The notes under the pieces are model-generated. The model was not told the origin of the DNA. It saw nothing but the letters and a program-made list of their open reading frames with translations, and searched no databases. Positions 17,512-54,300 of a DNA stretch of 64,000 bases are shown in pieces. The stretch is from Macrostomum hystrix. Its lineage: Eukaryota; Animalia; Platyhelminthes. A program made the translations under genes and the position numbers. Location: NCBI GenBank assembly GCA_950097015.1, contig CATNEN010000038.1, forward strand, positions 22,320,001 to 22,384,000, given 5' to 3'. Every line of letters begins with the position of its first letter. The stretch's first letter is position 1.

Positions 17512-19420
17512 CTTCAGCCAATCAGATTGCTCGCATCCAGGCGGCTGGCACTAGCCATCGCTCCTCGTTGGAGGCGCTTTAAAACTACCGTCAACGGTGG
17601 CGACAGTGCCTCCTCGTCGACAGACGCGCCAACGGACGAAGCAGCCGTCGACATCGACGATGACTTCGATCCGAGCCTGCTGCCACTTGGCGACGATCTT
17701 CGCCGCTATCCGTCCCACCGACCTTTAGACTGGCTTCAACGATCTGTCATCGCCGCCGGCTCCGGGATTGCCTGCCTGGCCGCGCCGTGGCGCGATGACA
17801 TGATCGCCGCGTTCGGCGAAACCACAGGCGAGTCGGCGCTGAGGAGAATGCGCGACGCGATGCTAGCAGACGAGGACGGGCGTAGAATACTGGCCGAGCG
17901 GCCTAGGATACGCACCATAGATGGTAGGATTCACCTGCAGTCTTGATCCCTGCTGTCTTGATCCCTGCAGTCTTGATCCCTGCTGTCTTGATCCCTGCAG
18001 TCTTGATCCATGCATTCCACACTGCCTGCATTCCACACTTCACATTTATCAGTCGGGGGTGAGTTGCAAAGTGGTCTAACGCGTTTGCCTCTCGCAAAGA
18101 GGTCCCTGAGCTCGATTCCGCGGCGAGGCCACATTCATTTTGTGGCGCAGCCGCGATGAGAAGGCTAGGGGGCTTGTCGTGCAATTTACGCCAGTGAGAT
18201 TGTACACTGCCTGACTATGAGAAAGTCAGGGCAGATGTACACAAGTGAGTGTGCCTGCGTACGGAATATGTGCGCGTGTGCTCAGGAGTCAGCGAAACGG
18301 GCAGAACTGCCTCCTCGATGGCTGCTGTTCTGTTGTCATCAAATGATGTGTCATTGCTTGCAGCCCTCCTGAAATTATATAATTATTATTACATTTATCA
18401 CTCCCTACATTCCACACTGCCTACATTAGGAAATCCCTGCATTCTATTCTTGCCGCATTCCCTCACCCATACAGGCGGCGGCAGTCTGAGCCTCGATTCC
18501 CTGCGCCAGCTGCCCGAAGGCAGCCTCGGTCGTGCCTACGCCGTGTTTCTCGACCGCTACGGCTACAGCCCAAACGATAGGCGAACTGTGTGCTTCGTTG
18601 ACGACCCCGAGCTGGCCTACGTTATGCAACGCTACAGGGAGACTCACGATCTCAATCACGTGCTGCTAGGACAGGTGAGTTCAAATGTATAGAATCTGAC
18701 GAATTTTATGGAATCTGATGTAGTTTATGGAATCTGACGAATTATATGGAATCTGACGAATTCTATGGAATCTGATGTAGTTTATGGAATCTGACGAATT
18801 CTATGCAATCTGACGAATTCTATGGAATCTGACGAATTCTATGGAATCTGACGAATTCTATGCAATCTGACGAATTCTATGGAATCTGACGAATTCTATG
18901 GAATCTGACGAATTCTATGGAATCTGACAAATTCTATGGAATCTGATGTAGTTTGTGGAATCTGACGAATTATATGGAATCTGACGAATTCTATGGAATC
19001 TGACGAATTATATGGAATCTGACGAATTATATGGAATCTGACTAATTAAACGGAATCTGACGAATTATATGGAATCTGACGTAGATAATGGAATCTGACG
19101 CATCTTTTTCGTGATATTTAAACAAACCGCCTGCCTCCCGTGAGCAGGGCACTGACTTCCTCGGCGAGGTTGTTGTCAAATGGTTCGAAGCCTTTCAAAC
19201 CGGCCTGCCGTTGTGCGTCACCGGCGCCCTGCTGGGCAGCCTTCGACTCCGGCCAAAGCAGACCAAGCGTTACCTGGATGGCGGCTACCTGGCATTTGCG
19301 TTGCGCGCCGGCTCTGAGGCTAAGCTGACCTTTAATTATTATTTTGAGCGCAACTGGCGGCTACCCTTGGCGGAGGTGCGGGACCAGCTGAGAATTCCGG
19401 AACCGCCGGCTTTGAAGTAG
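17512..19420 (+). CDS. COQ4: ubiquinone biosynthesis protein COQ4; exons ~17512-17923, 18475-18674, 19148-19420
   Basis: [36 protein letters not shown] (HDxxH), [16 protein letters not shown]; phases compatible; in-frame ATG not located. Confidence 0.92.
17935..18010. repeat. 15-bp intronic minisatellite
   Basis: unit CCTGCAGTCTTGATC. Confidence 0.85.
18052..18390 (+). mobile_element. SINE family B with 10-bp TSD
   Basis: TSD ACATTTATCA at 18042-18051 and 18391-18400; (ATT)n tail. Confidence 0.85.
18690..19100. repeat. 19-bp intronic minisatellite
   Basis: unit GGAATCTGACGAATTCTAT, about 21 copies. Confidence 0.95.
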
Positions 19421-19859
19421 ATTTTCGTCTTATTCACAATGCTCAGTATAAAAGCACACTATTGTTTCATTGCCGCATTACACATTTAGAATATACTTTT
19501 TTCACACTTTTTTTATCAACGTCTGCATAAAACTTGTGCTTTAAATAGTTGTCTGCCTATTGGCTTGTTTTTTTTTCGACCGATTCGAACGATTATAAAA
19601 ACGATCTGTGCAACTGAATCTCAACTGTTTGACTCGCTTTTTCATGCACCAATTAAGAAGTTTAAACAAGTATAGAGTAGTTTAATTTTAGAGTGCATTT
19701 TTGCATCAGTGCTATGAATAGATTTTAGTACCTTTATAAAGTGACAACTAAACTATTTTGTTATAAAGGCTCAGAATATATGTACAGCAATATCTTGGCG
19801 CAATTTTGCAAGCTCGGAATTCTTCAACATGCAAAGGCTGGCTATAAGCTTAGTCTAGT

Positions 19860-22800
19860 ATGACGTCAAATACGATCAACCAGGTAAATATGATTGGAAA
19901 ATTGTATTATGCAAATCTTATTTAGAATTGTAAATCAAATAAATAAGGTTGAAATTGTTCGCAGGCAATTATCCATGCACTCACAATTTAGATCATAAAG
20001 TACGTTCACTCCGGCAAGTGTGAGGAATTAAAAGCAGCAGCAAATCTCAAAGCCATGCTGCAAGAGAGGGACAGTAATAACCGCACAGTGCTGATCAATG
20101 CCGCTAACGTGAAATGCCCTCACAAGAGATTTACCGAGTGCATCGAGCTTATGCTAAGACTGGGCGCCGATCCGGCTGCCGCCGACAGTGACGGCGACAC
20201 CGCGGCTCACGTAGCAGCCCGATCCGGCAACCTGAAGATGCTCGCCATCTTGCCATTCAATTCCAAGTTCCTTCTCAACAGGGAAGGCTGCACACCCCTG
20301 ATGGAGGCTGTGAGGAAAGGCCGCTTCCGTTGTGTCAAGCACCTGCTGCACCTATTCAGACAGCAGCATTATTACCCGGAAAAGATTTCTCTGCTGAATT
20401 TGAAGAACAAGCTGGGACTATCGGCTATGGACATGGCGAAACGCAGCGAAAGAGGACGCGATATTAAGCAGGATATAATCGACATATTAGAAAAGTAAGT
20501 GTATAAAAACAAATTTTAATAATACAAAATATTTTTATTACTTTCGCACTCAATAAAGGTGCTGATTTTTATAATATATAAATGTTATACAAACATGTAG
20601 TATTATAGTATAGGTGGCGGAGTGGCGAAGCGGTTAACGTTTCTACTTACTGCACCCATATCACGCAAGCGAGGCCACATTAATTTAGGGCGCAGTCGCG
20701 AATAGAAAGCATGGGGGTCTTTTTTGTAACAAACGCCCTTGCCATTGTACCCTTGCTAACCCCCGGAGCACAATATGAGACAGTACACTGCCTGACGATG
20801 AGAAATTCAAGTGCAGATGCACGTTTGTATGTGTGCTGGGTACGGGTATCTGAGCGTGTGTGTATCTGGCTTAAGGCGTCGGTGGAAACTGCAGAATTAC
20901 CCTTTCGATGGCTGCAGTTACTGAAAAATTTCAATCTTTCATATTGGTTACATAAAAAACCGCATTTGGTTCATTTTTTCCAAAAACTACTTACACTACT
21001 TGATACTGTGCGAAGTGTATTATGTTATTTCAGCGAAATTGCATTGTTCCTCTGCGATGGCAAGCTCAGCGGACTCTCGAGTAAGGTGAGCTCAAAAAGC
21101 AATAAATCATGCACAGTTCAACCAAGACAATCGTTCCCACCTATTTGCAAAAACAAAATTACACAACATTTTCAGCAGCTGGAGATTTACAAGCAGATGA
21201 AACAACTCGCACTGAGCGGTAATTACACGGAGCTGCAACAGGTGGCCACACGAGTCCACTGCGACCTACCTGACGAGACAGGTCGGACGGTGCTGTCCTG
21301 GGCTGCTGCGGCTAACATCAGCTCATCGCACAGTATGCAGCTAACAATGCACGCGCTAATTGAAATCGGCGATCCAACAGCGGCGGATGTTAATGGCGCA
21401 ACCAGCCTGCATTATGCAGCGCTCTATCAGAAGGTGCACGCAGTTGGACTTCTTCTTGACCAGGGCGTACCGGCCAATATTCGCGACATGCAAGAACAAA
21501 CGCCCGTTATGTGGGCGGCGACTGTTCCAAGCAAAGCCAGTGGTACTCTACTCACACTATTAAGTTCAGGGGCAGACCATGAGCTTGAAGACAGCGAGGG
21601 TAGAACAGCACTATGGCTGTCCAAGAGTAACACTTCCAACCTTGCACTGACAACTCTGATTCAAGGGTGAGCTGACTGCTCAAAACTAAAATTATTTTGA
21701 TATTGGTTGCTTAGCAGATTACCGATAATAAATTATACAGAGCGAATGCATCATTAAATTGCCTAATTCAGAGGAGCAACTACAAGCGATGAGAACACCT
21801 CCCAAAGTAGAGCATTCAGAGGCGCTGAGGCACATCACCTGGCTTCTAATGCTTATCCGTCGAAGACGACGACGCCTTTGGACTTCATAGAGTCGAAAAT
21901 CAGACGACTGTTTAAAATGTGAATCACAATTCGCTAATTTATAATTTAGAGGCTACAACATTGTTTGTCTGCTTATGCGTCCTGAAATGTTTATCCAGTG
22001 CAAATTTACACACCACTTTCCATCCACAGGTCATCGCGAAAAGGAAGTTTAAATAATCCGCCCGAAATCGCGAATTTTAGGTATTGTAGCAAATTACGAG
22101 CATATTACAATAATGTAGCAATTGACAAGGATTATTATAACGAATTTACTTCGCAATTTTAGGCCAGAAAGGCACATTGATGAGGCAGCCATTTATCCGA
22201 TGACTTCACCAGGTCTACTTGTAATGTTTAACGTCAAGAATTACGACTCCGGGCGATACGGACAACGGACTGGATCCGGCAAGGATGTTGAACGATTGAA
22301 GGAGATCGCAGCGGAACTTAAATTTAACGTCGTACTTTATGAAGATAGAACAGCAGAAGAGTTGAAGGTCTGCCTGAAGAAACTGGCCAATGACACTGAG
22401 ACGCTGGAGAAAGCGGGATGCTTAATTTGCGTCTTGATGTCCCATGGAGAAAATGGGGCCATAGTCATGAAAGATGGCAAAAAGCGGCAGATCAATAAAA
22501 TCATTCAAGAGTTCAACTCCAGCTGGTGTCCCTCTCTTAAGAACAAGCCGAAGCTGTTCATTGTTCAAGCATGTCGCGGTGAAGGCATGGACATTCATAG
22601 ATCAGCTTCAGCTTCCACAGACGCGGGCCTGACTGGAGATTCTACTCCGTATTGTCGAGTCGAGAGTGACATTGCCATTTGTTACGCAACCACTGAAGGA
22701 CGCGCAGCGTATCGAAGCGAAACCGAGGAAGAGGGCTCGCCCTTCATCCAGACACTGTGCGAAGTGCTGCATGAGTTCCATGCCACCGAGCACATGCTGG

Positions 22801-22925
22801 ACATGCTGACCATTGTGAACCAACGACTTGGCCAGCGGCCCATCAAGTGTCCTCATGGTGACTGGTATATGGTGTCGCAGACTGTCACTCAGTTGTCAAG
22901 GAAGTTTTACTTGAGAAAATCGTAG
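19860..22925 (+). CDS. ankyrin-repeat caspase; predicted exons 19860-19883, 19992-20494, 21034-21085, 21176-21666, 21772-21918, 22030-22080, 22163-22925 (676 aa)
   Basis: ankyrin motifs DGDTAAHVAA, GCTPLMEA, NGATSLHYAA, QTPVMWAA, GRTAL; peptidase C14 motifs RTGS..D, MSHG, KPKLFIVQACRG, AYR, GSPFIQ; six GT-AG introns with compatible phases give one stop-free frame. Confidence 0.8.
20611..20925 (+). mobile_element. degenerate SINE family B (intronic)
   Basis: GCGAGGCCACATT, GTACACTGCCTGACGATGAGAAA, GCAGAATT shared with family. Confidence 0.65.
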
Positions 22926-24224
22926 GCACATCAGCCTAGTCGAAAAGTCATTCACGCTGATTGAATCAGAAAAAAAACTGATTGATCGATCGAATTACTT
23001 TTTAGTAAAAGGTTCCGATCAACCTCATGAATTGATCATGCTGAAATGTAGCTGTGCTTTACCTCCGACCGTAATTGAGATAAACGGAATGTCTCTGTTC
23101 GTAAGAGGTTTTGAGGCCAAGTTTTCAAGCTTTTGGAATAAATGTTAGCAAATTACGATTATCTTTATAACAACCTCTGTCAGAAGTTTACGCCAGGGAA
23201 TGATAAGGTTAAATTGAGTAAAAAAGAGATTATAACATGCTTGACATTTGCAAAGACAGCACAAACAACTATCTATATTGCGTCATTTAAAGCGTCAGTT
23301 TATTACGAAGGTGACATATATTATTATAAAAATAGAAGGACGTGAAATTAGTCAAATGGTAATTTTTGGCATAGTTTGTCTTTGGTTGCATTAGAGATAT
23401 TATAGCTAAAGTATTGTTAGCATGCAAAGTATGATGGCAGTGCTTAATCGAGCTCTACAAAGGAAATTTTTTTAGTTAGCTTCAATAACGATTATTTAAA
23501 GGACCAACGTTTAAATTATTTTTGGTGACACTTCGTAGAATAAATTTACTATAATGTATACACTTGACTAAGCTCCGAATGAGCACCACCAAGACAGAAT
23601 ATTTGAGTACTATACTACTACAACGGATTTGGCACAAGTAGTTCTCCAAAACACTATGGATTTATTTAAAAAGAACATTGAAAATAGGCTATGTTTAGTA
23701 TACAAAGGCTCACACTAGTATTAGTGACCAGCCAGACACAAAGAGACACAACGGGACAATTGGCGAGCAAGGCGAGCAACGCGCGGGAGGCGCACAGCGA
23801 AAAAGCGACCTCCAAGCTTTGTATTTTTTTTTAACGGGTTACAAAGAATTGAAAAAGGTAATATTTGTATTCGAGTAAAAAGCAGAAATTGAATTAAAAA
23901 AAAACTCAAGCGGAGAGCTGCGCGCAAATTGAATCCGAAAACGTGGTGAGAGGCTCACCTAAAAAGGCTAGCAGGCGGCGGGGGTGGGGGACGGCCCCAC
24001 CCCACACAGATGCACAGAGACAGCAAGGGGGCGGGCTGATCACTAAAGCCGGTTTGCACAGGCGCAAGCACCCATGCAAACCAAAGCATTAGTGACCAGC
24101 CAGACACAAAGAGACACAACGGGACAATTGGCGAGCAAGGCGAGCAACGCGCGGGAGGCGCACAGCGAAAAAGCGACCTCCAAACCCCAAAGCGAGCAAG
24201 CGAACAAAAGCAGAAGGCTGGGAG

Positions 24225-25283
24225 CTAAAACAAAGCAGAGACACCGCGGGCAAAAGTCACAGCAGCCTCCGCTGTCTGGTGAAACCGGGGGAGATAACGC
24301 TGCACAGCTTCACTTCTCCAGTCACCAATGCGCATGATATCAGCCACTGGGAGGCCCAGCACAGACGCCCAGGTAGCTCCTCCTCGTCGCAGGCTGTGCG
24401 CGGAGTAAGATTCTGGTCGAACGCCGACTGCGGCAAACTTGTCACGGAGGAAGCAGTCCAGGTGCCTCCCAGTCAGCAGGCGCAAGCCGCCACTTCCGTC
24501 GGCGTAGGACCAGAGTGGTGACTCTGCTGACTTCAATTCGTTGGCGCGGATGTGTCGCTCGACTGCGCTAACCGGGCACAGCGCACGCTGCCGCGCCAAT
24601 CTCGGCAGCAGTACCAGGTGGCTGCGCTCCTTGAACTGGATGGTCTTGCCGAACTCGCAGCGCAACACCAGACCCTTCGGATGCTGAAGCAGGTCGGCGC
24701 GCCGGGAAAGGGCCGGGCCCTTGCCAGTTCGTGGCAGAAAGCTGGACTTTCGCAGCATTCCCCACCAGCAGCAGATGGTCACAGCCCAGCAGGCCAGCTG
24801 CAGCCTGTCGGTCTCGTCAACTAGTCGTCGCATCTCCGTCAGCATTGTAGGCGACACAGGCCGCTTTCGGTTCACGCGCAGTCCGAGGACTCGTTTAGCG
24901 CCGCGAAGGAGAAGAACCGCGGAAGCGTGCTTAGTTAGGTCCGGCGACGAGTTAATTCGGAACCAGAGCGACAGAGAGCTGTAGACTGCCGAGATGCTGC
25001 TGTAGGCATGTAGCCGTGTGCCGATCAGACTGGCCAAATAGTTCAACAGGCTCGTGACGTTGCCGGACACTGGATCGCAGCCGGTATGGCGGCAGAACTC
25101 CCGCCACTCACGGACGTGTCTGTTGACTGCCTGCGCCGACCTCGGTGCGTACGCAGCGCTCAGCAGCGATGTGGCGCGGCTGCTAAGAGAGTCTGACGCA
25201 GCTGGGCGGCCTGAAAATGAAGAAAGGAGGCGGTCGCCAAGCCAAAAGCATGCTGATACAGTGATTGTAGAATGCTTGGGCAT
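24225..25283 (-). CDS. tyrosine recombinase of the Ngaro element
   Basis: LRKSS (R), GKT (K), HSLRRGGAT (HxxR), GDW, RYL (Y); LCPV motif. Confidence 0.92.
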   Translation of the reverse strand: MPKHSTITVSACFWLGDRLLSSFSGRPAASDSLSSRATSLLSAAYAPRSAQAVNRHVREWREFCRHTGCDPVSGNVTSLLNYLASLIGTRLHAYSSISAVYSSLSLWFRINSSPDLTKHASAVLLLRGAKRVLGLRVNRKRPVSPTMLTEMRRLVDETDRLQLACWAVTICCWWGMLRKSSFLPRTGKGPALSRRADLLQHPKGLVLRCEFGKTIQFKERSHLVLLPRLARQRALCPVSAVERHIRANELKSAESPLWSYADGSGGLRLLTGRHLDCFLRDKFAAVGVRPESYSAHSLRRGGATWASVLGLPVADIMRIGDWRSEAVQRYLPRFHQTAEAAVTFARGVSALF

Positions 25284-26869
25284 ATAAAACCATACAAGCG
25301 GAGTAAAAAGTTTAAAAGCTGGCCTCGCTCATGCAACCGCGAGGCAGCGTCCGCAAAAATTTGAAAATCACCAGGCACATGAAACGCGCGAATGCTCATT
25401 CCAAAGCGCAAACACATCAGGGCCACCGTCTGCAGCAGCCGCTGCAACGCAGGACACTTTGAAACGCCTTTGTTGATGATGTGACAGGCCGTCTGGTTGT
25501 CGCAGTAGATGCTCACCTTGCAACCTTTGAGCACATCCCTCCACCTCATCACTGCCAGCAGAGGGACCAACGCTTCCTTGTAGTTGATCGGCAGGTTCGC
25601 GAAGGCTGATCCTGCATCCTTCTCCCAGTCCAGGTAGCACCAGTCAAACAGACCATCCTGGTCACGCAGCAGCGCCGCACCACCTCTGCCGCACGCATCG
25701 GATTCCATCGCCACAACTCGATTGTAGCTCGGCCACAGCTGCACCCATCGGCACGCCTGCAACGCCACCTTCCACCAGTTCAGCTGACTGCGTAACCCGG
25801 AGTCGACCAGCGTTCGCTGTCCACGCCGTAAGGTGTTGCACCGCTCAATCAGCTCACGCAAGAAGGTCCTTCCGCAACTGATGACCTGCGCTGCCCACCC
25901 CAACTTGCCAATGACCTGTTGGAGGGCTCGCTGACTAATCCTCACCTTGGCTGACTCGGCACCAACCAGGTTGATCAACTTCCTCGCCTTCTCATCCGGC
26001 AGCTTCTTGATTCCTTCCACAGTGTCGAACTCAATTCCAAGGAATGACATCCGCTGCGCCGGCGGCTGACACTTGGCCGGGTTGACGGTGAATCCCAGCC
26101 GAGTCAGCAAGTAAATCAGATCGACGTAGAAGCGCTGGCAGTTCTCCTGCGTCCCGCAGTAGGCAAAGTCGTCCAGGTAAGACTCGGTGTTGATGAAGCC
26201 TCTGCGCACCATCATCAGATGAATCGCATTGCTCAGGCGTTGAAAGCACGTGACCGAGGCTGCCGCCCCGAACGGCAGGCGTGTATCGAACATGTAGGTG
26301 GGAGTGGCGCAGCCAGGAAACTTGAACTTGAGACCGGTGTTGACGAAGTCTTCTGGGTGCACTCCACATGCGCGGTATGCTTCACTCAGGTCAACTTTAG
26401 TCATACGAGTATAGCAGCCTCTCGTTAACTTACTTGCGAAGTTTTCAGCGCTTGAAAACCGCAACTTCTCATTGCTCTCCCAGTGCGCGTTCACCGACAG
26501 ATTGTCCGGCCGACTGCAATCGTGAATTAGACGTACCCGGCCGTCATCCTTCGGCAAGGCTCCCAGCGCACTCACAATCCGAGGCCGCCACCCATCCGAG
26601 CACCGACGGTAGCGGTCAAGGCGAATTTCCCTCAGAATTTGCGTTTGAACAGCTTCAGCGTAAACATTCACAGATTCATAGTTGCTGACCTCGACAGACT
26701 TCAGGTTGTCTCGCTGCACATTCGTAATCCGAAATCCTTCCGACACACCATTCAGGATAAATTGCTTTCTGTCCAGCGGCAGATCGATCGACTCCAACTC
26801 TTCCGTCCATGCCTCCAGCTTCAGGTCAGTTGATAAAACAGAGGAAGTTAAAACCGGATCGACGCGCAG
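25160..26869 (-). CDS. reverse transcriptase / RNase H of the Ngaro element
   Basis: KVDLSEAYR, LPFG, YLDD, FLG; RNaseH SDAC, NYKE, YCDN, ADAASR; frame is open back to the gag stop at 26870-26872. Confidence 0.92.
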   Translation of the reverse strand: MRVDPVLTSSVLSTDLKLEAWTEELESIDLPLDRKQFILNGVSEGFRITNVQRDNLKSVEVSNYESVNVYAEAVQTQILREIRLDRYRRCSDGWRPRIVSALGALPKDDGRVRLIHDCSRPDNLSVNAHWESNEKLRFSSAENFASKLTRGCYTRMTKVDLSEAYRACGVHPEDFVNTGLKFKFPGCATPTYMFDTRLPFGAAASVTCFQRLSNAIHLMMVRRGFINTESYLDDFAYCGTQENCQRFYVDLIYLLTRLGFTVNPAKCQPPAQRMSFLGIEFDTVEGIKKLPDEKARKLINLVGAESAKVRISQRALQQVIGKLGWAAQVISCGRTFLRELIERCNTLRRGQRTLVDSGLRSQLNWWKVALQACRWVQLWPSYNRVVAMESDACGRGGAALLRDQDGLFDWCYLDWEKDAGSAFANLPINYKEALVPLLAVMRWRDVLKGCKVSIYCDNQTACHIINKGVSKCPALQRLLQTVALMCLRFGMSIRAFHVPGDFQIFADAASRLHERGQLLNFLLRLYGFICPSILQSLYQHAFGLATASFLHFQAAQLRQTLLAAAPHRC

Positions 26870-27970
26870 TCAGTGCAGAGGCCTGCTCACCTCAGCACCG
26901 TCATCCCTGTGCGCCATCGCCGCTGAGTGGCCAAGTCCACAACGCCGGCACCGATGAGCGAAACGGCAGTTCCGCCTTGAACATCCAGTTTCCTTATTGA
27001 AATCAAAGCAGGGTGGCTGCAGGCTTTGTTTTGGCACCCGGTCAACTCTGGCAGTCGGTGCACTCTGTGGGGCCATCAGGTAGGTGGCAACTCGACCAAG
27101 GTCGGATCCACGCAACTCCCATGACGTCTCGCCATCTTCACTCAGTCTGCACTCGTCATCAAACCTCATAACTCGAGCCTTGTCGAACCCGAGGTCAAAT
27201 AGCTCGCCAATGCGCGCAGTGTAGCGCAGGTAGTCTCGCAACTCTGACACATCAGGCTGGCCGCCCAGCCCGCTCTTCACCAACCTGCCATCATCCAGCA
27301 GCTTTAGCATGATTCGAGCATTCGCCGAGATCCAGTCTCCAAACGTCAGCGAGTCAACAACAGCTTCCCTCACTCTGAAGGTGACTCTTCCGGATTTGTC
27401 AATGGACTGAGTAACTCCTGCTTCCTGCTGCTTCCGCTTGTTAATAAACTCAGGGATTCGGTACACCTTGCCTACAAACCGACTGGGCTCTTGCTGGGCA
27501 GCATCTTCATCGTCAGACCACAGGTTAATGAGCAACTCACCGGGGTTCTTTGACGTCGCAGGCCTTCGCTGAAGTTGGCTGACTTCTGCCTGAAGCAGAG
27601 CGGCCTCCTTGCGTAGCTTTAGCAGTCGGAGCTGCTTCTCAGCCTCCACCAGCTCGTCGTCCAGGCCGCCAGCCGCGTCAGACTCTTGACCATGTTGTAC
27701 CGACTCGTTCGCGATAGAAGGCAGTTGCCTCTCCGCCATAGCGCCGTCTCTTCTCATACGCGTCGTCACTGCGGCAGCTTCATCTTGCTCCTCGTCCTCG
27801 TCGTCCGCATTCTCAAAGTCGGAGGCGATACCCTCGAGGTGCGCCCTCAGCCGCAGTAAAAGTTCACATTTTTTGCCTTGTGTTGAAAGCCCTAGGCTCT
27901 GAAGCTTCTGACGTAGCGCCCTTACAGTGCTAGGCGCTTCGGATGCAAGTGGCTCGTTAGAGTTTGGCAT
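26870..27970 (-). CDS. gag-like ORF1 with N-terminal SAP motif and C-terminal Cys/His finger
   Basis: TVRALRQKLQSLGLSTQGKKCELLLRL; CFDFNKETGCSRRNCRFAHRCRRCGLGH. Confidence 0.85.
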   Translation of the reverse strand: MPNSNEPLASEAPSTVRALRQKLQSLGLSTQGKKCELLLRLRAHLEGIASDFENADDEDEEQDEAAAVTTRMRRDGAMAERQLPSIANESVQHGQESDAAGGLDDELVEAEKQLRLLKLRKEAALLQAEVSQLQRRPATSKNPGELLINLWSDDEDAAQQEPSRFVGKVYRIPEFINKRKQQEAGVTQSIDKSGRVTFRVREAVVDSLTFGDWISANARIMLKLLDDGRLVKSGLGGQPDVSELRDYLRYTARIGELFDLGFDKARVMRFDDECRLSEDGETSWELRGSDLGRVATYLMAPQSAPTARVDRVPKQSLQPPCFDFNKETGCSRRNCRFAHRCRRCGLGHSAAMAHRDDGAEVSRPLH

Positions 27971-35212: not shown

Positions 35213-38200
35213 TCAGGGACTCTCAGACTCTAGTCGGCCGGCATCAGACTTCAAAATCGGCAGCAGCTGCTGCTGCTGCTGGTGCTGCTGCTGCTGCTGT
35301 ACAGGCTGATCAAAACTGTCAACTATTGAAATACAATTGTCAACAGCATCCAACGAAGGACCATCGGGCTGGTAGATCAACGAATTCAACGAAGAATTCC
35401 TAGTTGAATTAGTCGACGAAGACGAAGTTGAAACCGATTGCGAACGTTCAGCGTCGCCGTCGTCCAGTTCGGGCGAGTTGCACGGCACCCGCTCGTCGCC
35501 CTCGTTGTCGCTGTCGCTGTCGCTAGCCGCAGCTGATGGCAGGCTATCAGCTGACAGTCGATAATGATCAAGCCATTGCACGAGCAGCTGATGAACTAGC
35601 GGATGCGGCCTGCCATTGCCAAGGCGGACCCGACACATCAGCTGCTGGCCGCCGCCGCCGACGCCGCCGCAGCGGACGCAATCCAGCCAGTCGGTTAGAA
35701 GTGCATCGCGTCTATTAGTTTCTTCGGCGTTTAAAAAGTGAACAGGCAGACGGACACCGTAGCGATCGCACAGAGGCAACAGGCCGCAGCCGTTAGCAAA
35801 CAGATCCGGCCGTCTAGGGGGAGGCTGCAGCGGCATCAGGGCCGAGAAATGATTCTTTGTGTAGGCCAGGCATAGGGGATTTCTAGAGCAGAATGCGCGC
35901 TCCCACAGCAGCGGCAGGTAGACTCCCTGCACAGGTGATTTATATTAAAAGTGTATCATTTCTAATTAACCGTGTTTGGAACAGTAATAGCTTACTACGA
36001 GCAGTAGACAGAAAGGAAAAAAGTACACACTAGACGTTTTGCATTTTCTTGAAATCTTGGCACAACACAGCTAAACCTTTTGTAACAAAATAAAATTAAG
36101 GAAGCGATATGCATCTAAAACTATATTCAGAACACAACATTCTTGGGCACTTTTCAGACAGTTCCGTACATATTTAAATCCGATATGTATCGAAAAGCAA
36201 TTAAAAAAGGACAGTTTCTAAACTTTTAGAATAAAATTTATTTATTTAAATAATAAAAGTTTGCCTTAACTTAATTCATTTTCTAATTGGAATTGCATAT
36301 AAAATGGATTTTTAAATATATTTTACACTGCTTCAATGCTCAAACCAACACGATATGTATCGAAAAACGCAAAAGCTCACCTGAAAGTTAGAATAGGCAA
36401 TAGGCTCATCGCGATAGTTGCATATAATCCGCACGCCCAATATGATGATCGGCCGGCGGAGTACGTGGCAGAGCGCAAACACGTGCACCTGTTCAAGCGA
36501 CTCGCCAGGCATTCTGGCCCGACGGAGCAGAGCTTCCCAATCGCGCCGCCATTGAGCTTCGCTAAGCGAATAGCAAAGCAGCGAGGCGGCCAACTGTTGC
36601 TCTTCGTAGTCTCGCCAGCGACTATAAAATGCGTCCTCGCAGTCGTGCATGGACTCAGACAGAGCGCGTCGCAGGCTGTTATCTTCGTCTAGGATGCCCC
36701 AGCTGGCCTGCAGGACGCTGTCTAGCAGGCAGTCGCCAGCTGTGCGGTTCCACAGGGCCCACATGCGGAATACGCCGCTGTCGGCTGGCCACCAGTTGAC
36801 TGCGCCGACGGATTCGAGCTCTGTGTGCGTTAAATTACCGAAGCTTTAGTTTAGGCCGATATGTATCGAAAAACGAAAAAAATATGCAAAGTTAAATATT
36901 TTACCAATTCTAAAATATCAGACTAAAATATCAAAAGCATTGTATTTAATCCGACATGTATCGAAAAAAGAAATAATTCACTGATTGCACATGGCTACAG
37001 AATTCCTAAAATCCGATATGTACAGAAAAAACTCTGTACTAGTGATTCGATAATATTATAAATGAGATATATATCTAAGAAAGAATAAAATCGTACGTAT
37101 CTAAAAAACTCTATCAACTGATACCTAATTGAAAAAAACGGCGTACAGGGATTTGAGCTCTATGTAGCAGTTATAAGTTAAGGCGATATGTTTCGAATAC
37201 AAAATATAAACATACAATTCAATTAAAAAAATATGACAAACGAAGTTTTTAATCCGATATGTATCGAAAAAAGATTTTTTCGATTTTCCTTATAAAAAAA
37301 ACTGACCTTTCTGAACAGCGGAGTCGACAACGTCGCTCATTAGCTGATCCTGCACATGCTGCGGCAATTCGTGATAGCCTAAGCCAGCCGGCAAGTAGAA
37401 CAGGCTGTGTTCGTTAACATAGAAGCATGGCAGGTTGCCTTTTCGTTGGCGCAAATTGCAAACAACTTGACGACGAATATCAAGGGCAGTGTCTGGCGAG
37501 ACCTGGCATGGTAGGCGCTTAGTGTTCGACCTGGAAAAGTTGATTGTTTTTCGATTCAATAGGAAGGCGACTCAGGAATTTGAATAAAAACCTGATATTA
37601 GTATGTGGATTAGCAATGGGGATTAGGGATGGACTCTGACAATTGGGATAAGGGATGCAGTCAGGGATTAACCATAGATATCAGGGATGAGAATAAAAAA
37701 ACTGGGATCTTAGTTAATTAATATCCTAATTAATGTCAGGATTAACAAAATGGGATATTAGGGATCAGTATTGACTGACAGTAAATGAGGCATCAAACCT
37801 GAGGTGCACGGCCTGCACCAGCAGTGACATGAGTTGCTCCTGAGAAGCGCTGTACCTCACTAGCAGCGAGGATAGACTCATGCCAGGCGCAAATAACGAG
37901 CAGCCGCCCCTGTAGCGATTCAGCTGAGCTGCCTCAGGCTTAGTCAGCCGTCTGGCAATGGAGGCGCCAGGCGCATTGATGTAGGCTTCAACAGGTCCGG
38001 AATCGCCATCGACAGCGGCTAGGCAGGCGCAGAGCCACAGGAAGTCCGGGTCACGCATTGGCGACTGCCTGCCGCCGCAGCCGATGACATTCGGATTAGC
38101 GATGCCGCCGCCGCCGATGGCGCCTTCAGCTGGCGGACTCTCCGAGCGCCTTTTCTCGCACATTGCGCACTTCAATGTGTTTGGCCAATTCTCGTAGGTG

Positions 38201-38931
38201 CAAATTTTGCATGCCCATTTGCCTAGAGGATTCTTGCTTGAAGTACTACTTGAATTAGTAGTAGTGTTAGCAGATAAGGCAGATTCAATCGGCACAGCCT
38301 GCTGATTCGGGTCGGCTGTAAGAGCGGACGCCGCCGAGCCTGTCGGGCTAGACGGCGGAGGCGGTGGCGACGATGGCGGAGGCGGGTTGGTGTTCTCAGT
38401 GTAGCACTGAACGCAACGATGCGAGCGGGGCCAATTTAGAAAGGTGCAAGTCGGACAGGACCATTTCAGTTCGGACGGCGAACCGGGCGGCCGCTGCGAC
38501 AATGTTGTCGCTGACGACGCCGACGATCTTGGCGATGGTGCCGACTGCGAAGAAGAATCTACTCGGTGTTGCTGACGACGACTGCGGCGTACTTGACGCT
38601 GCTTGGCAACGGCGTTGCCACCAACTCCGGCTAGCTTGTAGATGTCGGCCTCTTCTTCGTCATCGTCGGTCTGGTTGCCATAGCAACCATTGTCATTTTC
38701 ATCGTCGTCATCGTCTTGTTCGGCTTCTCCTTCACCGGCGTCCTCTTGAAGACCGGACGCGGCTCTGGGCGCCCGATCCACTGCTGGCGGCTTGTCAGAG
38801 ACAACGATAATGCCAGAAGAAACGCCTGACAATGCTGAAGACTTTTTAGTCCGGCAGCAGACGCAATGGCGCGAGGCTGGCCAGTTGGCGTAGGTGCACG
38901 CTGGGCAGGACCATTTTTCGCTCTCTGTCAT
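35213..38931 (-). CDS. ZRANB1: TRABID OTU deubiquitinase; exons 38931-37799, 37530-37307, 36820-36381, 35926-35213
   Basis: three NZF fingers (KW.C..CT..NW.....C..C), ALWNRTAGDCLLDS, LEQVHVFALCHVLRRPII, GVYLPLLWE, YTKNHFSAL. Confidence 0.93.
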
Positions 38932-51300: not shown

Positions 51301-54300
51301 GGCGAAGCTACTACCACGCAGCATCACTTATTAACCCACCACATTTGAAGTATAGTATTAGCAAATACCAGTGGTAGTTTTCCGACTGAGGCCCGCTTGA
51401 GTTCAGCGGCCTCCTCAGTGGTTGGCATAGCAACAGCGAGCAGCTGCTGGCACAGGTGCCCGGAGAGACAGTTGCCGGAGTCCATGCTGGCCACAGCTGA
51501 GACTAGTTTGTCCTCATCGATTTGCGACATTCGCAGACTCTGCAGCAGAATTTCTAGAGCCTTCCGTCGCTCCTGGCTGAGAATTTTAACATAGGAGGCG
51601 GAGAGACGAGCGCTCAAATGCTGACTGGCCGAGTACTGCTGCGGTTGCGTCTGCAACTGGAGCTCTGACTTATGCTCCCGCTGCTGCTGTTGCTGCTTCT
51701 CTTCAGCCCATGGGTCGTCACCGTCGGCCGAGTCGTCTATCACTGGACGATCGCCAAAAGTGCGTTCAATGTCTCGTAGGTTGAATTCGGCAATGGCCTG
51801 AAAAAGCCAGATAAGGTAATATTTTAGTGATTGTATTGGTTGCATTTAGCGGAGAGAAATAATTTACCTTCTCAACGCTGACCCGCGACCACACGCTATC
51901 GCGTCCCGGCTCTGTCGCCAGAAGCGGTGCGTGAAATCGACGAACCCGAATGCGAGGCCTAGCAAATTTCAACGGCGTTGAGCTGCCCGACGCTGTTAGA
52001 AGGCCGTTTGGCTGACCTCCGTGCGGAGGCGGCGGCGGTGGTGGAGGAGGTGGCGGTGGCGGTGGCGGTGGCGGCGGCGGAGGCGGTGGTGGAGCTGCCT
52101 GTGACAATCGCGCAGTTGAGTCCAGCTTGTCTGAAAAAATAGATGAGCACAGATTAAATACCTAGCTAGAGTTTTACTCTCTGGAGATTTACTTCAAGAT
52201 CAATGGAAAAGGCAGAATTGCCTCCTCGTTGACGATATGATGTTGATACACTGAGAGAAAACTTAAAAGGATTAAATGTCCATGACGGTTTAGGGGAACA
52301 CATTCTCTGGCCAGGCCGGGCCAGCGTAAGGGCACCATCACTGAACGGCTTGAGTGTTACATCTCCGGTCATTTTACGAGGCCGACTTCCTTACCCATCC
52401 AGCTTTTATCTTCTCCCGGACACTTACCCCCATTTTTGGCTTCGTTGGCCAGCCGTGTCTCAAGAATCGTCACCGCGCCTCGCAGCCGGCTTATCTCGGC
52501 AGCCTGCGCTTCCAGCAGCTGATCCTTGCCTGCCAGAGAGCGCCTCCCGGCCTCCAATTCGTCCTGCATCAGCCGGCCGCGGTGGCGCAAATCGTCAGCC
52601 TGCGCAGCCAGACTGCGGCACCCGGCCTCCAGCTCTTCCAGCCGGTGCTCCACCCTAGCGACGCACAGTCCGGGCAGCAGCCGCATCGCATCCTCGTCGT
52701 TGTTGACATCATCAACTTCACTCGCGTCGCACAGCTGCTCCATCATAAGAGCGCCAAGTCTAAGCCGAGCATGTCGACCCTCAGCTAGCATCAGGCCGCA
52801 CGTCTCCAGCATGGCGCGTCCGTGACAACCGTCGTCAAGTAGCGTCAGAGTGGCACCCAGATCCTCGTCGGGCGCCGATGCGTACAGCCAGGATGCCATC
52901 TCGGTGGCGTCATCAGCGGCCAGGCTGCGGAAGGCCTCGCACTGGCTGTAAAAGTTCGGCGCCAAACGGTGAGGCGACTCAGCCAGGAGCTGATCAATTC
53001 CCCACCTGCGCAGGTCGGCTCGAAGCAGAGCCCGACGTCGCAGTTGACTCCGGCGCAACTGATCGCTTGACGCCTTCGAGTTCACTGGCTGCGCCGGTGG
53101 AACGCAATGAAGCAGCGAGTTGATGAGCGCCAGCAGGGACACGGCGAGGTCAACGCTGCCCGCCCAGGCCAGCTCGCGAACCAGAAGGTGAAAACGTCGA
53201 CCACCGGCGATGGCTTGGCGATCGATCGCTTTCATCACCCGACGCCAGCCCGCGCCCAGGGCCAGCACCGCCAGTATGTTGCTGGCGTACAGCTTGGCGT
53301 GACTATTCACCTTGGTCACCAGGGCGCCTAGCAACGCATCAGTCAGGCTTGGGTGCTCGGCGACAGCGTCGCGGCCAAGCTGGATGTTCATGGCGCAGTA
53401 CAGGCAGCGCAAAAGACTGACGGCGATGGCATCGTCATAGCTGTCGATGGACAGAACTTCGGACAATGCGTCCAGACCGCCGCCGTCAAGAAAAGCGCGA
53501 ACGAAGCTGATTGGCTGTGAGCGCAGTGAGGCTGACAAGCCGTCCAATAGGCGTGCTGGTGAGTCATCGACAACCATGCGCTTTGGGTTGGAGAAATAGG
53601 AGTTTCATTTTCATTTACGATACGCAGCCTAAAAAACAAAAGGCCTAGTAAACTAAAAAAAGAAATAAAAATATGTCGTCTCGTTGTCATTTAAGCTATC
53701 GCGTAAACCGATTTTCGTTGCTAAGAACAAACATAATTCTATATCTTTTCCTCAAAATGTTTATTATACGAGGTACCTTAATATGCTTTACAAGCTACCT
53801 GAACGGTTTGACTTAAGTTTTTAAAACCCTTAGCTTTAAAAAATCCGGCTTTAAAAAATGCCTCTTTGAAAACTGCAATATTAAAAACTTTCCGGCTTTG
53901 GAAACTTCCGCGTTGGAAACTTCTGCCCCAAAATGGAAAATAATGAAACCTTCTACTTTATACCACCCCTGGAGCGAATAAGTAAAGTAAATAAGTAAAT
54001 AAGTAAATGAGGTTGTAGCCTAGTGGTTAAGGTGTCGGACTCACGACTTGAAGGTCGGGTGTTCGATTCCCGACTCCACTGGAACAATTTGCGTCCTTTA
54101 GCAAGACACTTAACTCTACATTGCTTCAGTTCACCCAGCTGTTAAATGGGTACCAGCATCAGCTGGGATAATTAAAGGTGGGTGTGGCGTCCCCCCAGTC
54201 CGTGGACTGAACAGCTGTACGCAGCCTTCAGATGCGCCGCGCATTAGCTGCGGCTGTGCTGTCGGCTGCACATCTGACCCAATTGGGGCAGGTGTAATCA

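Follow-up and report, generated by a model that had tools for sequence, protein, structure and literature searches.

The gene described here belongs to the flatworm Macrostomum hystrix. It lies on the forward strand at positions 19860-22925 of a 64,000-nucleotide stretch of contig CATNEN010000038.1 (positions 22,320,001 to 22,384,000), hereafter called the window. In our view it is likely that this is one expressed Macrostomum gene encoding a 676-residue caspase with an ankyrin repeat (ANK) module, an ANK caspase, and that the ANK module would act as a recognition or recruitment domain triggering activation of the protease by proximity. What is new is an ANK caspase that is spliced, expressed and, by prediction, catalytically intact, with a conserved putative orthologue in free-living flatworms.

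Ankyrin repeats and caspase domain are encoded by one spliced mRNA

Three separate open reading frames (ORFs; 20055-20498, 20711-21670 and 22122-22925) are listed across the gene, yet the original prediction had joined seven exons at GT-AG sites into one stop-free frame. This model could be reproduced, including its phases (0,2,0,2,2,2). With AG acceptors and GT donors, the seven exons of 19860-22925 on the + strand give 2031 nt, that is 676 codons and one terminal stop. The GC content of the exons is 41-53% and that of the six introns, which measure 82-539 nt, is 27-39%. Coordinates are collected in Table 1.

Four small public sequencing runs contain 70-78% of the sampled words of the window. 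Contigs assembled from runs X3, X4 and X5, three samples of one study, were placed on positions 19000-23900. These contigs skip 19884-19991, 20495-21033, 21086-21175, 21667-21771, 21919-22029 and 22081-22162; each skip has GT..AG ends and coincides exactly with a predicted intron. In all three runs, five of the six joints are present; that of the first intron is found in two of them, X4 and X5. One 2,327-nt contig (X5 record 19) covers exons 1 to 7 and continues into the 3′ untranslated region (UTR), up to 23208, and X3 and X4 have one contig each that links exon 4 (ankyrin) with exons 5, 6 and 7 (caspase). The predicted 21666-21772-22030-22163 junctions are therefore spliced in assembled contigs of three runs, and the ankyrin and caspase exons were found together, from exon 4 to exon 7 in the three runs and from exon 1 to exon 7 in one contig, rather than in separate mRNAs. 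Unspliced contigs were also observed over intron 2, at low depth (5-12 versus 35-70).

A DNA search of the whole genome found no second genomic copy of the exons, which rules out a retrocopy as the source of the spliced contigs. Because the contigs are spliced and the genome has no intron-less copy, X3, X4 and X5 were taken as RNA. On the same grounds, the ankyrin and caspase parts share one mRNA; the gene is expressed and correctly spliced.

In addition, run X1, from another study and guessed to be RNA, gave a 369-nt contig that matches part of the caspase exon (22179-22547) without a difference. This identity shows that the same or a very close species has been sequenced twice.

Table 1. Features of the ANK-caspase gene in the window, and related loci elsewhere in the genome
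Feature	Position	Strand	Remarks
5′UTR, minimum extent	19821-19859	+	X4 contig extends 61 nt upstream of the exon 1 donor
Upstream ORF, 9 codons	ATG 19829, TAG 19856-19858	+	In the 5′UTR; read from sequence
Exon 1	19860-19883	+	Start codon and 7 codons; phase 0 donor; joint 19881/19883->19990/19992 in X4 and X5
Exon 2	19992-20494	+	ANK block 1: N-cap and about 4 ankyrin repeats; Pfam Ank_2 1.6e-13
Dispersed repeat, about 250 bp	20669-20915	.	Inside intron 2, outside the mRNA
Exon 3	21034-21085	+	17-aa connector between the ANK blocks; joints 20494->21034 and 21085->21176 in X3, X4 and X5
Exon 4	21176-21666	+	ANK block 2: N-cap and about 4 ankyrin repeats; Pfam Ank_2 2.1e-17
Exon 5	21772-21918	+	Part of the linker; no Pfam match; flanking joints in three runs
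Exon 6	22030-22080	+	Part of the linker, after intron 5; flanking joints in three runs
Exon 7	22163-22925	+	Entire predicted caspase domain (p20, inter-subunit linker, p10) and stop codon
First S1-pocket Arg codon (RTGS)	22266-22268	+	Aligned on the P1-Asp-binding Arg of caspase-7; kept in paralogs
Catalytic His codon (SHG)	22443-22445	+	Aligned on the caspase-7 His; kept in all ANK-caspase paralogs
Catalytic Cys codon (QACRG)	22572-22574	+	Aligned on the caspase-7 Cys
Candidate inter-subunit processing site S-T-D	22614-22622	+	Cut after 22622; further Asp sites GMD/I and TGD/S nearby
Second S1-pocket Arg codon (AYRS)	22713-22715	+	Aligned on the P1-Asp-binding Arg of caspase-7; kept in paralogs
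3′UTR, extent seen in contigs	22926-23284	+	Contig ends: 23208 (X5), 23260 (X4), 23284 (X3)
Further ANK-caspase loci	C38:15.43 Mb; C1:23.97 Mb; C7:0.165 Mb and twin on C8; C5:4.19 Mb (two in tandem)

The caspase domain is predicted to be catalytically intact

Searches against Pfam and protein collections were made exon by exon. Exon 7 matched the Peptidase_C14 profile (PF00656) over 22218-22832 with an E-value of 1.9e-40 and 139 bits, for a cut-off of 21.4. Its best solved relatives are human caspase-7 and caspase-3 (108 bits, about 1e-30 to 1e-27 with HMMER). The motifs named in the original prediction, SHG, QACRG and the arginines of RTGS and AYR, indeed fall on functional residues of caspase-7 in the HMMER alignment. 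In the profile alignment, the window caspase retains R-H-G-Q-C-R-R, and the residues forming the S1 pocket for a P1 Asp (Arg in RTGS and in AYRS, Gln in QACRG) are in the expected columns. Overall, the caspase is predicted to be catalytically intact, with a complete Asp-specific machinery. The position of Trp206 in caspase-3 is occupied by a Tyr in the window caspase, and caspase-8 also has a Tyr at the equivalent position.

The linker between the two subunits contains the Asp sites GMD/I, STD/A and TGD/S, which correspond to RMD/V, PTD/F(S) and SGD/S in the orthologue from Macrostomum lignano described below. In paralogs, an S/A-T-D/S motif recurs in the inter-subunit linker. Because Asp sites recur in the orthologue and in the paralogs, STD/A, already proposed in the original prediction, is a reasonable candidate for the processing site.

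A putative orthologue in Macrostomum lignano

Exon 7 was searched by exhaustive HMMER against 1.84 billion representatives. Its best matches were P0001 (55% identity) and P0002 (59%), with P0004 and P0016 a few ranks lower; all four are predicted proteins of M. lignano, a free-living species. Among the matches listed, M. lignano proteins are the closest named relatives of all three parts of the protein (ANK1, ANK2 and caspase), and P0001, P0002 and P0016 have the architecture Ank+Peptidase_C14. P0001 aligns with the window gene along its length: residues 9-174 with exon 2 (ANK block 1, 55% identity), residues 197-355 with exon 4 (ANK block 2, 65% identity, the best-conserved part of the protein) and residues 369-569 with exon 7 (caspase, 53% identity). 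Like the window gene, P0001 has 8 residues ahead of the exon-2 match. At the level of sequence, the ankyrin part is no less conserved than the protease. The accessions of the M. lignano orthologue are A0A1I8GQ20 and A0A1I8HKM7.

The window caspase groups with P0001 and P0002 in a tree of 78 caspase domains built with IQ-TREE; the clade has a value of 99 in the Shimodaira-Hasegawa-like approximate likelihood ratio test (SH-aLRT). Several further one-to-one pairs between the genome and M. lignano are found in this tree, one of them 80% identical in the caspase domain. Since all close relatives are M. lignano proteins, an insect origin, guessed from the short introns, was rejected. Judged from alignments and tree, P0001 is the 1:1 orthologue of the window gene, with the order ANK1-ANK2-caspase. 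More widely, the window gene stands within an unresolved flatworm assemblage of the tree that includes the ANK-kinase-caspase of M. lignano. A link to DED caspases was considered and was not resolved by the tree of 78 domains.

No ANK caspase from a parasitic flatworm was found among the best 150 matches of the exhaustive search. Word-indexed searches with the caspase regions of P0016 and of P0041, another M. lignano protein, returned Macrostomum proteins and one tick protein only.

Ankyrin blocks, linker and fold model

Metazoan initiator caspases normally use death-fold prodomains. That an ankyrin prodomain replaces CARD or DED in the window gene, as the original prediction had it, was borne out: Ank_2 was matched in exons 2 and 4, and no CARD or DED was detected by Pfam at E<0.01 in exons 2, 4 and 5, exons 1, 3 and 6 amounting to about 42 residues together. 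The prodomain has two ANK blocks, the second being an internal duplicate of the first; a weak match of the exon-4 peptide was also found in block 1 both of P0001 and of paralogous loci. The linker that follows was put at roughly 70 aa, a fair estimate, as it comprises 66 aa from exons 5-6 and about 12-18 residues of exon 7 before the start of the Pfam domain. Exon 5 contains no Pfam domain, and the linker of exons 5-6 was unmatched in the paralogous loci and in the M. lignano orthologue model.

Variability of the ANK module was then compared between the six classical target-binding positions of each repeat and the remaining positions, in a canonical register set by hand. Across 14-16 paralogs, the entropy is 2.04 bits at the binding positions versus 1.06 bits at the others (p=2e-10, Mann-Whitney). 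Between the window gene and P0001, identity is 48% at the binding positions versus 68% at the others (p=0.012, Fisher).

An AlphaFold model was computed for P0001 as a proxy, from a 14-row family alignment. Its mean predicted local distance difference test (pLDDT) value is 79.7. Residues 1-355 form two ankyrin-type blocks of about 5 helix pairs each, giving about ten ANK-type repeats. Values below 50 are found at residues 356-371 (junction of ANK and caspase) and 496-520 (inter-subunit linker), and the rest has the caspase alpha/beta fold. Because pLDDT is below 50 there in the orthologue model, the inter-subunit linker of the window caspase is likely to be flexible. With this model as query, Foldseek ranked two-domain ankyrin proteins on top and caspases lower; the top types were DARPin-DARPin fusions, tankyrase ARC pairs and ankyrin-B repeats with autoinhibitory segments.

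The ankyrin module recurs in a gene family

About 57 caspase loci were counted in the genome, which measures 220 Mb in 42 contigs. Both catalytic residues, His and Cys, are retained in 41 of the 48 caspase domains that cover at least 190 of the 250 profile positions. For the exon-2 ANK block, about 35 paralogs with 41-49% identity were found, of which many lie at 22-27 Mb of contig C1. All 15 paralogous loci that were fetched match at least one ANK exon peptide, mostly with an exon-2-like block followed by an exon-4-like block. Six loci besides the window gene carry an ANK module 0.7-3.5 kb upstream, on the same strand, of a caspase of the same clade, so that the genome has at least seven ANK caspases. 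The locus at C38:9.30 Mb (L021) was not counted, its caspase being in another clade and 5 kb from the ANK block; it is probably two genes. Two of the ANK-caspase loci, C7:163251-169200 and C8:4633454-4639013, have caspase domains 98% identical, reflecting either a recent duplication or uncollapsed haplotypes.

The same module is also found on kinases. The paralog at C1:23.93 Mb is an ANK-kinase-caspase, and five other checked loci are ANK-kinases with no caspase within 10-15 kb. The kinase of these ANK-kinase genes is closest to the STE group (ASK1, TNIK; 74 bits). In M. lignano, related caspases have ANK, ANK+kinase, Ras/Roc or LRAT prodomains. In the window gene itself, a kinase remnant was sought by tblastn with the P0041 kinase and none was found in 19000-24000. 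Sequence comparison thus describes a Macrostomum-wide family in which a two-block ANK module precedes a caspase, an STE-like kinase, or both. That kinases and caspases bear the same ANK module suggests that a recognition module has been moved between proteins by domain shuffling. No DED domain was detectable in the genome by a six-frame search run without a positive control, and one CARD was found just upstream of a caspase, on C30.

Some further observations concern these loci. The cluster at C1:22-27 Mb (for example L013, L014, L016, L018 and L020) has the two-block ANK module followed by an STE-like kinase, whose catalytic loop, HRD-I/V-N-C-S/T-N, is without the usual Lys. In about 10 cluster copies, the block-1 match contains one in-frame TGA, at a position common to all of them; it may reflect an intron or a shared defect. 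At C29:4.81-4.83 Mb (L055, L057 and L058) are caspases orthologous or close to P0004, a Ras/Roc-prodomain caspase of M. lignano; L057 is without the catalytic Cys.

Other features of the window

The upstream ORF of the ANK-caspase mRNA stops 1 nt before the main ATG, in another frame. The neighbouring transcript ends near 19526. Within the gene, only the repeat of intron 2 has other genomic matches (652 first-look candidates; the 39 listed have 68-75% identity), and loose-ended contigs of unrelated transcripts accumulate at 20776-20809. A tRNA or tRNA-derived element was considered for intron 2 and rejected, since ARAGORN reported no tRNA and the stretch is a dispersed repeat.

Three further regions of the window, all on the minus strand, have recognizable coding features. 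Retroelement-like ORFs occupy 24228-27970, with a reverse transcriptase at 25163-26797 (RVT_1, 1.4e-9) and, as the next ORF upstream, one with a SAP domain at 26873-27970. A RanBP2-type zinc finger (1.8e-10) is encoded by the ORF at 37768-38931, which also matches AnkUBD weakly; its product resembles the N-terminal part of a TRABID-like deubiquitinase. An exon at 52372-53577 with Diaphanous GBD and FH3 domains belongs to a formin gene.

Proposed activation mechanism and alternatives

By analogy with CARD and DED caspases, ligand-induced proximity is the most likely mechanism of activation. The ANK module would be the recognition or recruitment domain, in place of the CARD or DED of apical caspases, and would bind a specific protein partner. 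Clustering on this partner would bring the caspase domains together, leading to their dimerisation and to cleavage of the flexible linker between the subunits at the conserved xTD site. The active protease would start a cell-death or immune-type response. The role of the ANK module, the binding of a partner, the dimerisation and the type of response are what we infer from this analogy.

Several points count against this proposal or the data behind it. To our knowledge, ankyrin repeats are not known as oligomerisation platforms. By raw similarity, the executioners caspase-7 and caspase-3 are nearest to the catalytic domain, and the caspase tree is not resolved at its deep nodes; for these reasons the putative apical role rests mainly on the long prodomain. 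The presumed recognition face of the ANK module changes fastest, which would fit a recognition surface of diverging specificity. However, faster change at exposed positions is expected in any ANK family because the framework is constrained, and the variability lends weak support only. The run records of the spliced contigs carry no RNA label. The M. lignano orthologue models are truncated and without the exon 5-6 linker, and the orthologue architecture comes from automatic predictions. Finally, the searchable literature yielded no experimental work on an ANK caspase.

The ANK module might alternatively be a substrate-selecting exosite or a localisation anchor, the caspase being activated otherwise, for instance by an upstream caspase. 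Such a role is conceivable though rather unlikely. The best scores against executioner caspases-7 and -3 would agree with it, as would the kinases bearing the same ANK module, which fits a general targeting module for different enzymes directed to the same partner class; moreover, the conserved Asp sites of the linker could be cut in trans. Executioner-type caspases, however, normally have short prodomains, and the Tyr at the position of caspase-3 Trp206 is as in caspase-8. A published survey (Horkan et al. 2024, Genome Biol Evol 16:evae204, PMC11463336) also puts ANK caspases in a sister position to DED initiators, with low support (posterior probability 0.61). An intramolecular inhibitor, which would silence the zymogen before cleavage of the linker or displacement of the module by a ligand, appears improbable. 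It could be imagined since designed ankyrin repeat proteins can inhibit caspases (cited in PMC11463336), since ankyrin-B repeats have been solved with autoinhibitory segments of the same protein (Foldseek matches 5y4f and 5y4d) and since a long flexible linker separates ANK and caspase. A contact between ANK and caspase has no support, however, the fold model being without inter-domain confidence, and the linker shows no conservation, not even in the orthologue model.

That the copy is a catalytically silent decoy or a decaying duplicate within a large gene family is highly improbable. Loss of His or Cys does occur in the genome, in 7 of the 48 well-covered caspase domains, but the window copy keeps R-H-G-Q-C-R-R, its frame is open, it is transcribed with correct splicing and its orthologue is conserved. 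There is next to no likelihood that two neighbouring genes, one for an ankyrin protein and one for a short-prodomain caspase, were joined only by the gene model or by a chimeric assembly. The separate ORFs of the list and the low-depth unspliced contigs over intron 2 are what such a pair could leave. Yet in contigs of three samples exon 4 is followed by exons 5, 6 and 7 through GT-AG junctions, exons 1-7 are all present in one contig, the frame is open through every junction, and the fusion is independently predicted in M. lignano and at no fewer than six further loci of the genome.

A broader scheme, which we put forward tentatively and hold to be unlikely as a whole, would make of these genes a modular receptor-effector family. 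In this scheme, a diversifying ANK module shared by about 35 genes, with caspases, STE-like kinases or both behind it, would let a self or microbial ligand directly trigger either kinase signalling or caspase-mediated death, with the window gene as one conserved member, and ANK caspases would go back to an innovation of ancestral rhabditophorans and not to an adaptation to parasitism. M. lignano is a laboratory model amenable to RNA interference and transgenesis. With the Macrostomum orthologue pair, the activation of a caspase that has no death-fold prodomain could be tested directly for the first time.

Comparison with known caspases

With the death-fold initiators (caspase-8 and -10 with DED; caspase-2, caspase-9, Dronc and CED-3 with CARD), the window gene has in common a long interaction prodomain, an Asp-containing linker likely to be flexible and a predicted intact Asp-specific site, and with caspase-8 also the Tyr at the Trp206 position. 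They differ in that the initiators have a CARD or DED, whereas no such domain was found in the window exons searched.

Ank+Peptidase_C14 proteins also occur in the tick Haemaphysalis longicornis (P0165), the jellyfish Sanderia malayensis (P0077), an arthropod cluster of 55 members and bacterial clusters. These proteins share the domain pair and its order with the window gene. The caspase domains of the tick and jellyfish proteins, however, are outside the flatworm group in the tree, and their ANK parts match the window ANK exons weakly. Because of the position of these caspase domains, the non-flatworm proteins are most likely independent fusions. Zebrafish Caiap (PMC5662874) is described as an inflammasome adaptor with CARD and ankyrin domains that binds caspase-1, and without a protease domain. 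By this description, an ankyrin domain is coupled to caspase activation in innate immunity there too, although through a separate adaptor, unlike in the window gene.

The closest published counterparts are found in the survey of 60 lophotrochozoan genomes by Horkan et al. 2024. The ankyrin-caspase architecture, whose spread the original prediction had left to a search, is already described there under the name 'ANK caspases', which form one monophyletic group specific to platyhelminths, with DED caspases as sister. According to the survey, such a protein was first noticed in Schistosoma by Lee et al. 2014 (Trends Parasitol); in the searchable literature, neither the term 'ANK caspase' nor a study of such a protein was found elsewhere. 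ANK caspases are proposed there as initiators, and a 'kinase pro-domain caspase' is given as their sister. The M. lignano protein P0041 (PAA47029.1), with ANK, Pkinase and caspase domains, fits the description of the latter. P0041 has the same two-block ANK module as the window gene (91 bits with exon 2, 71 bits with exon 4) and a related caspase (33% identity); it contains a kinase where the window gene has the 66-aa domain-free linker.

Compared by description, the parasite ANK caspases of the survey are built like the window gene, with an N-terminal ankyrin pro-domain replacing CARD or DED before a p20/p10 caspase. The window genome, with no detectable DED and one CARD caspase, also follows the 'ANK or DED, not both' pattern of the survey. 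Copy number differs, with about one ANK caspase per species in the survey versus at least seven in the window genome. The survey further reports that FADD was lost in the lineages at issue. Shuffling of the shared ANK module is relevant to how cell-death and immune pathways are rebuilt without a detectable DED (here) and without FADD (PMC11463336).

The main difference concerns distribution. ANK caspases were stated to be restricted to parasitic flatworms and were linked to parasitism (PMC11463336), whereas free-living macrostomids are the source of the window gene and of its M. lignano relatives. The free-living Macrostomum ANK caspases contradict the published claim that these proteins are confined to parasites and arose with parasitism, and leave the structural definition of the group unaffected. 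Overall, the data fit an origin of ANK caspases that is older, perhaps close to the base of Rhabditophora, with a later loss in planarians.

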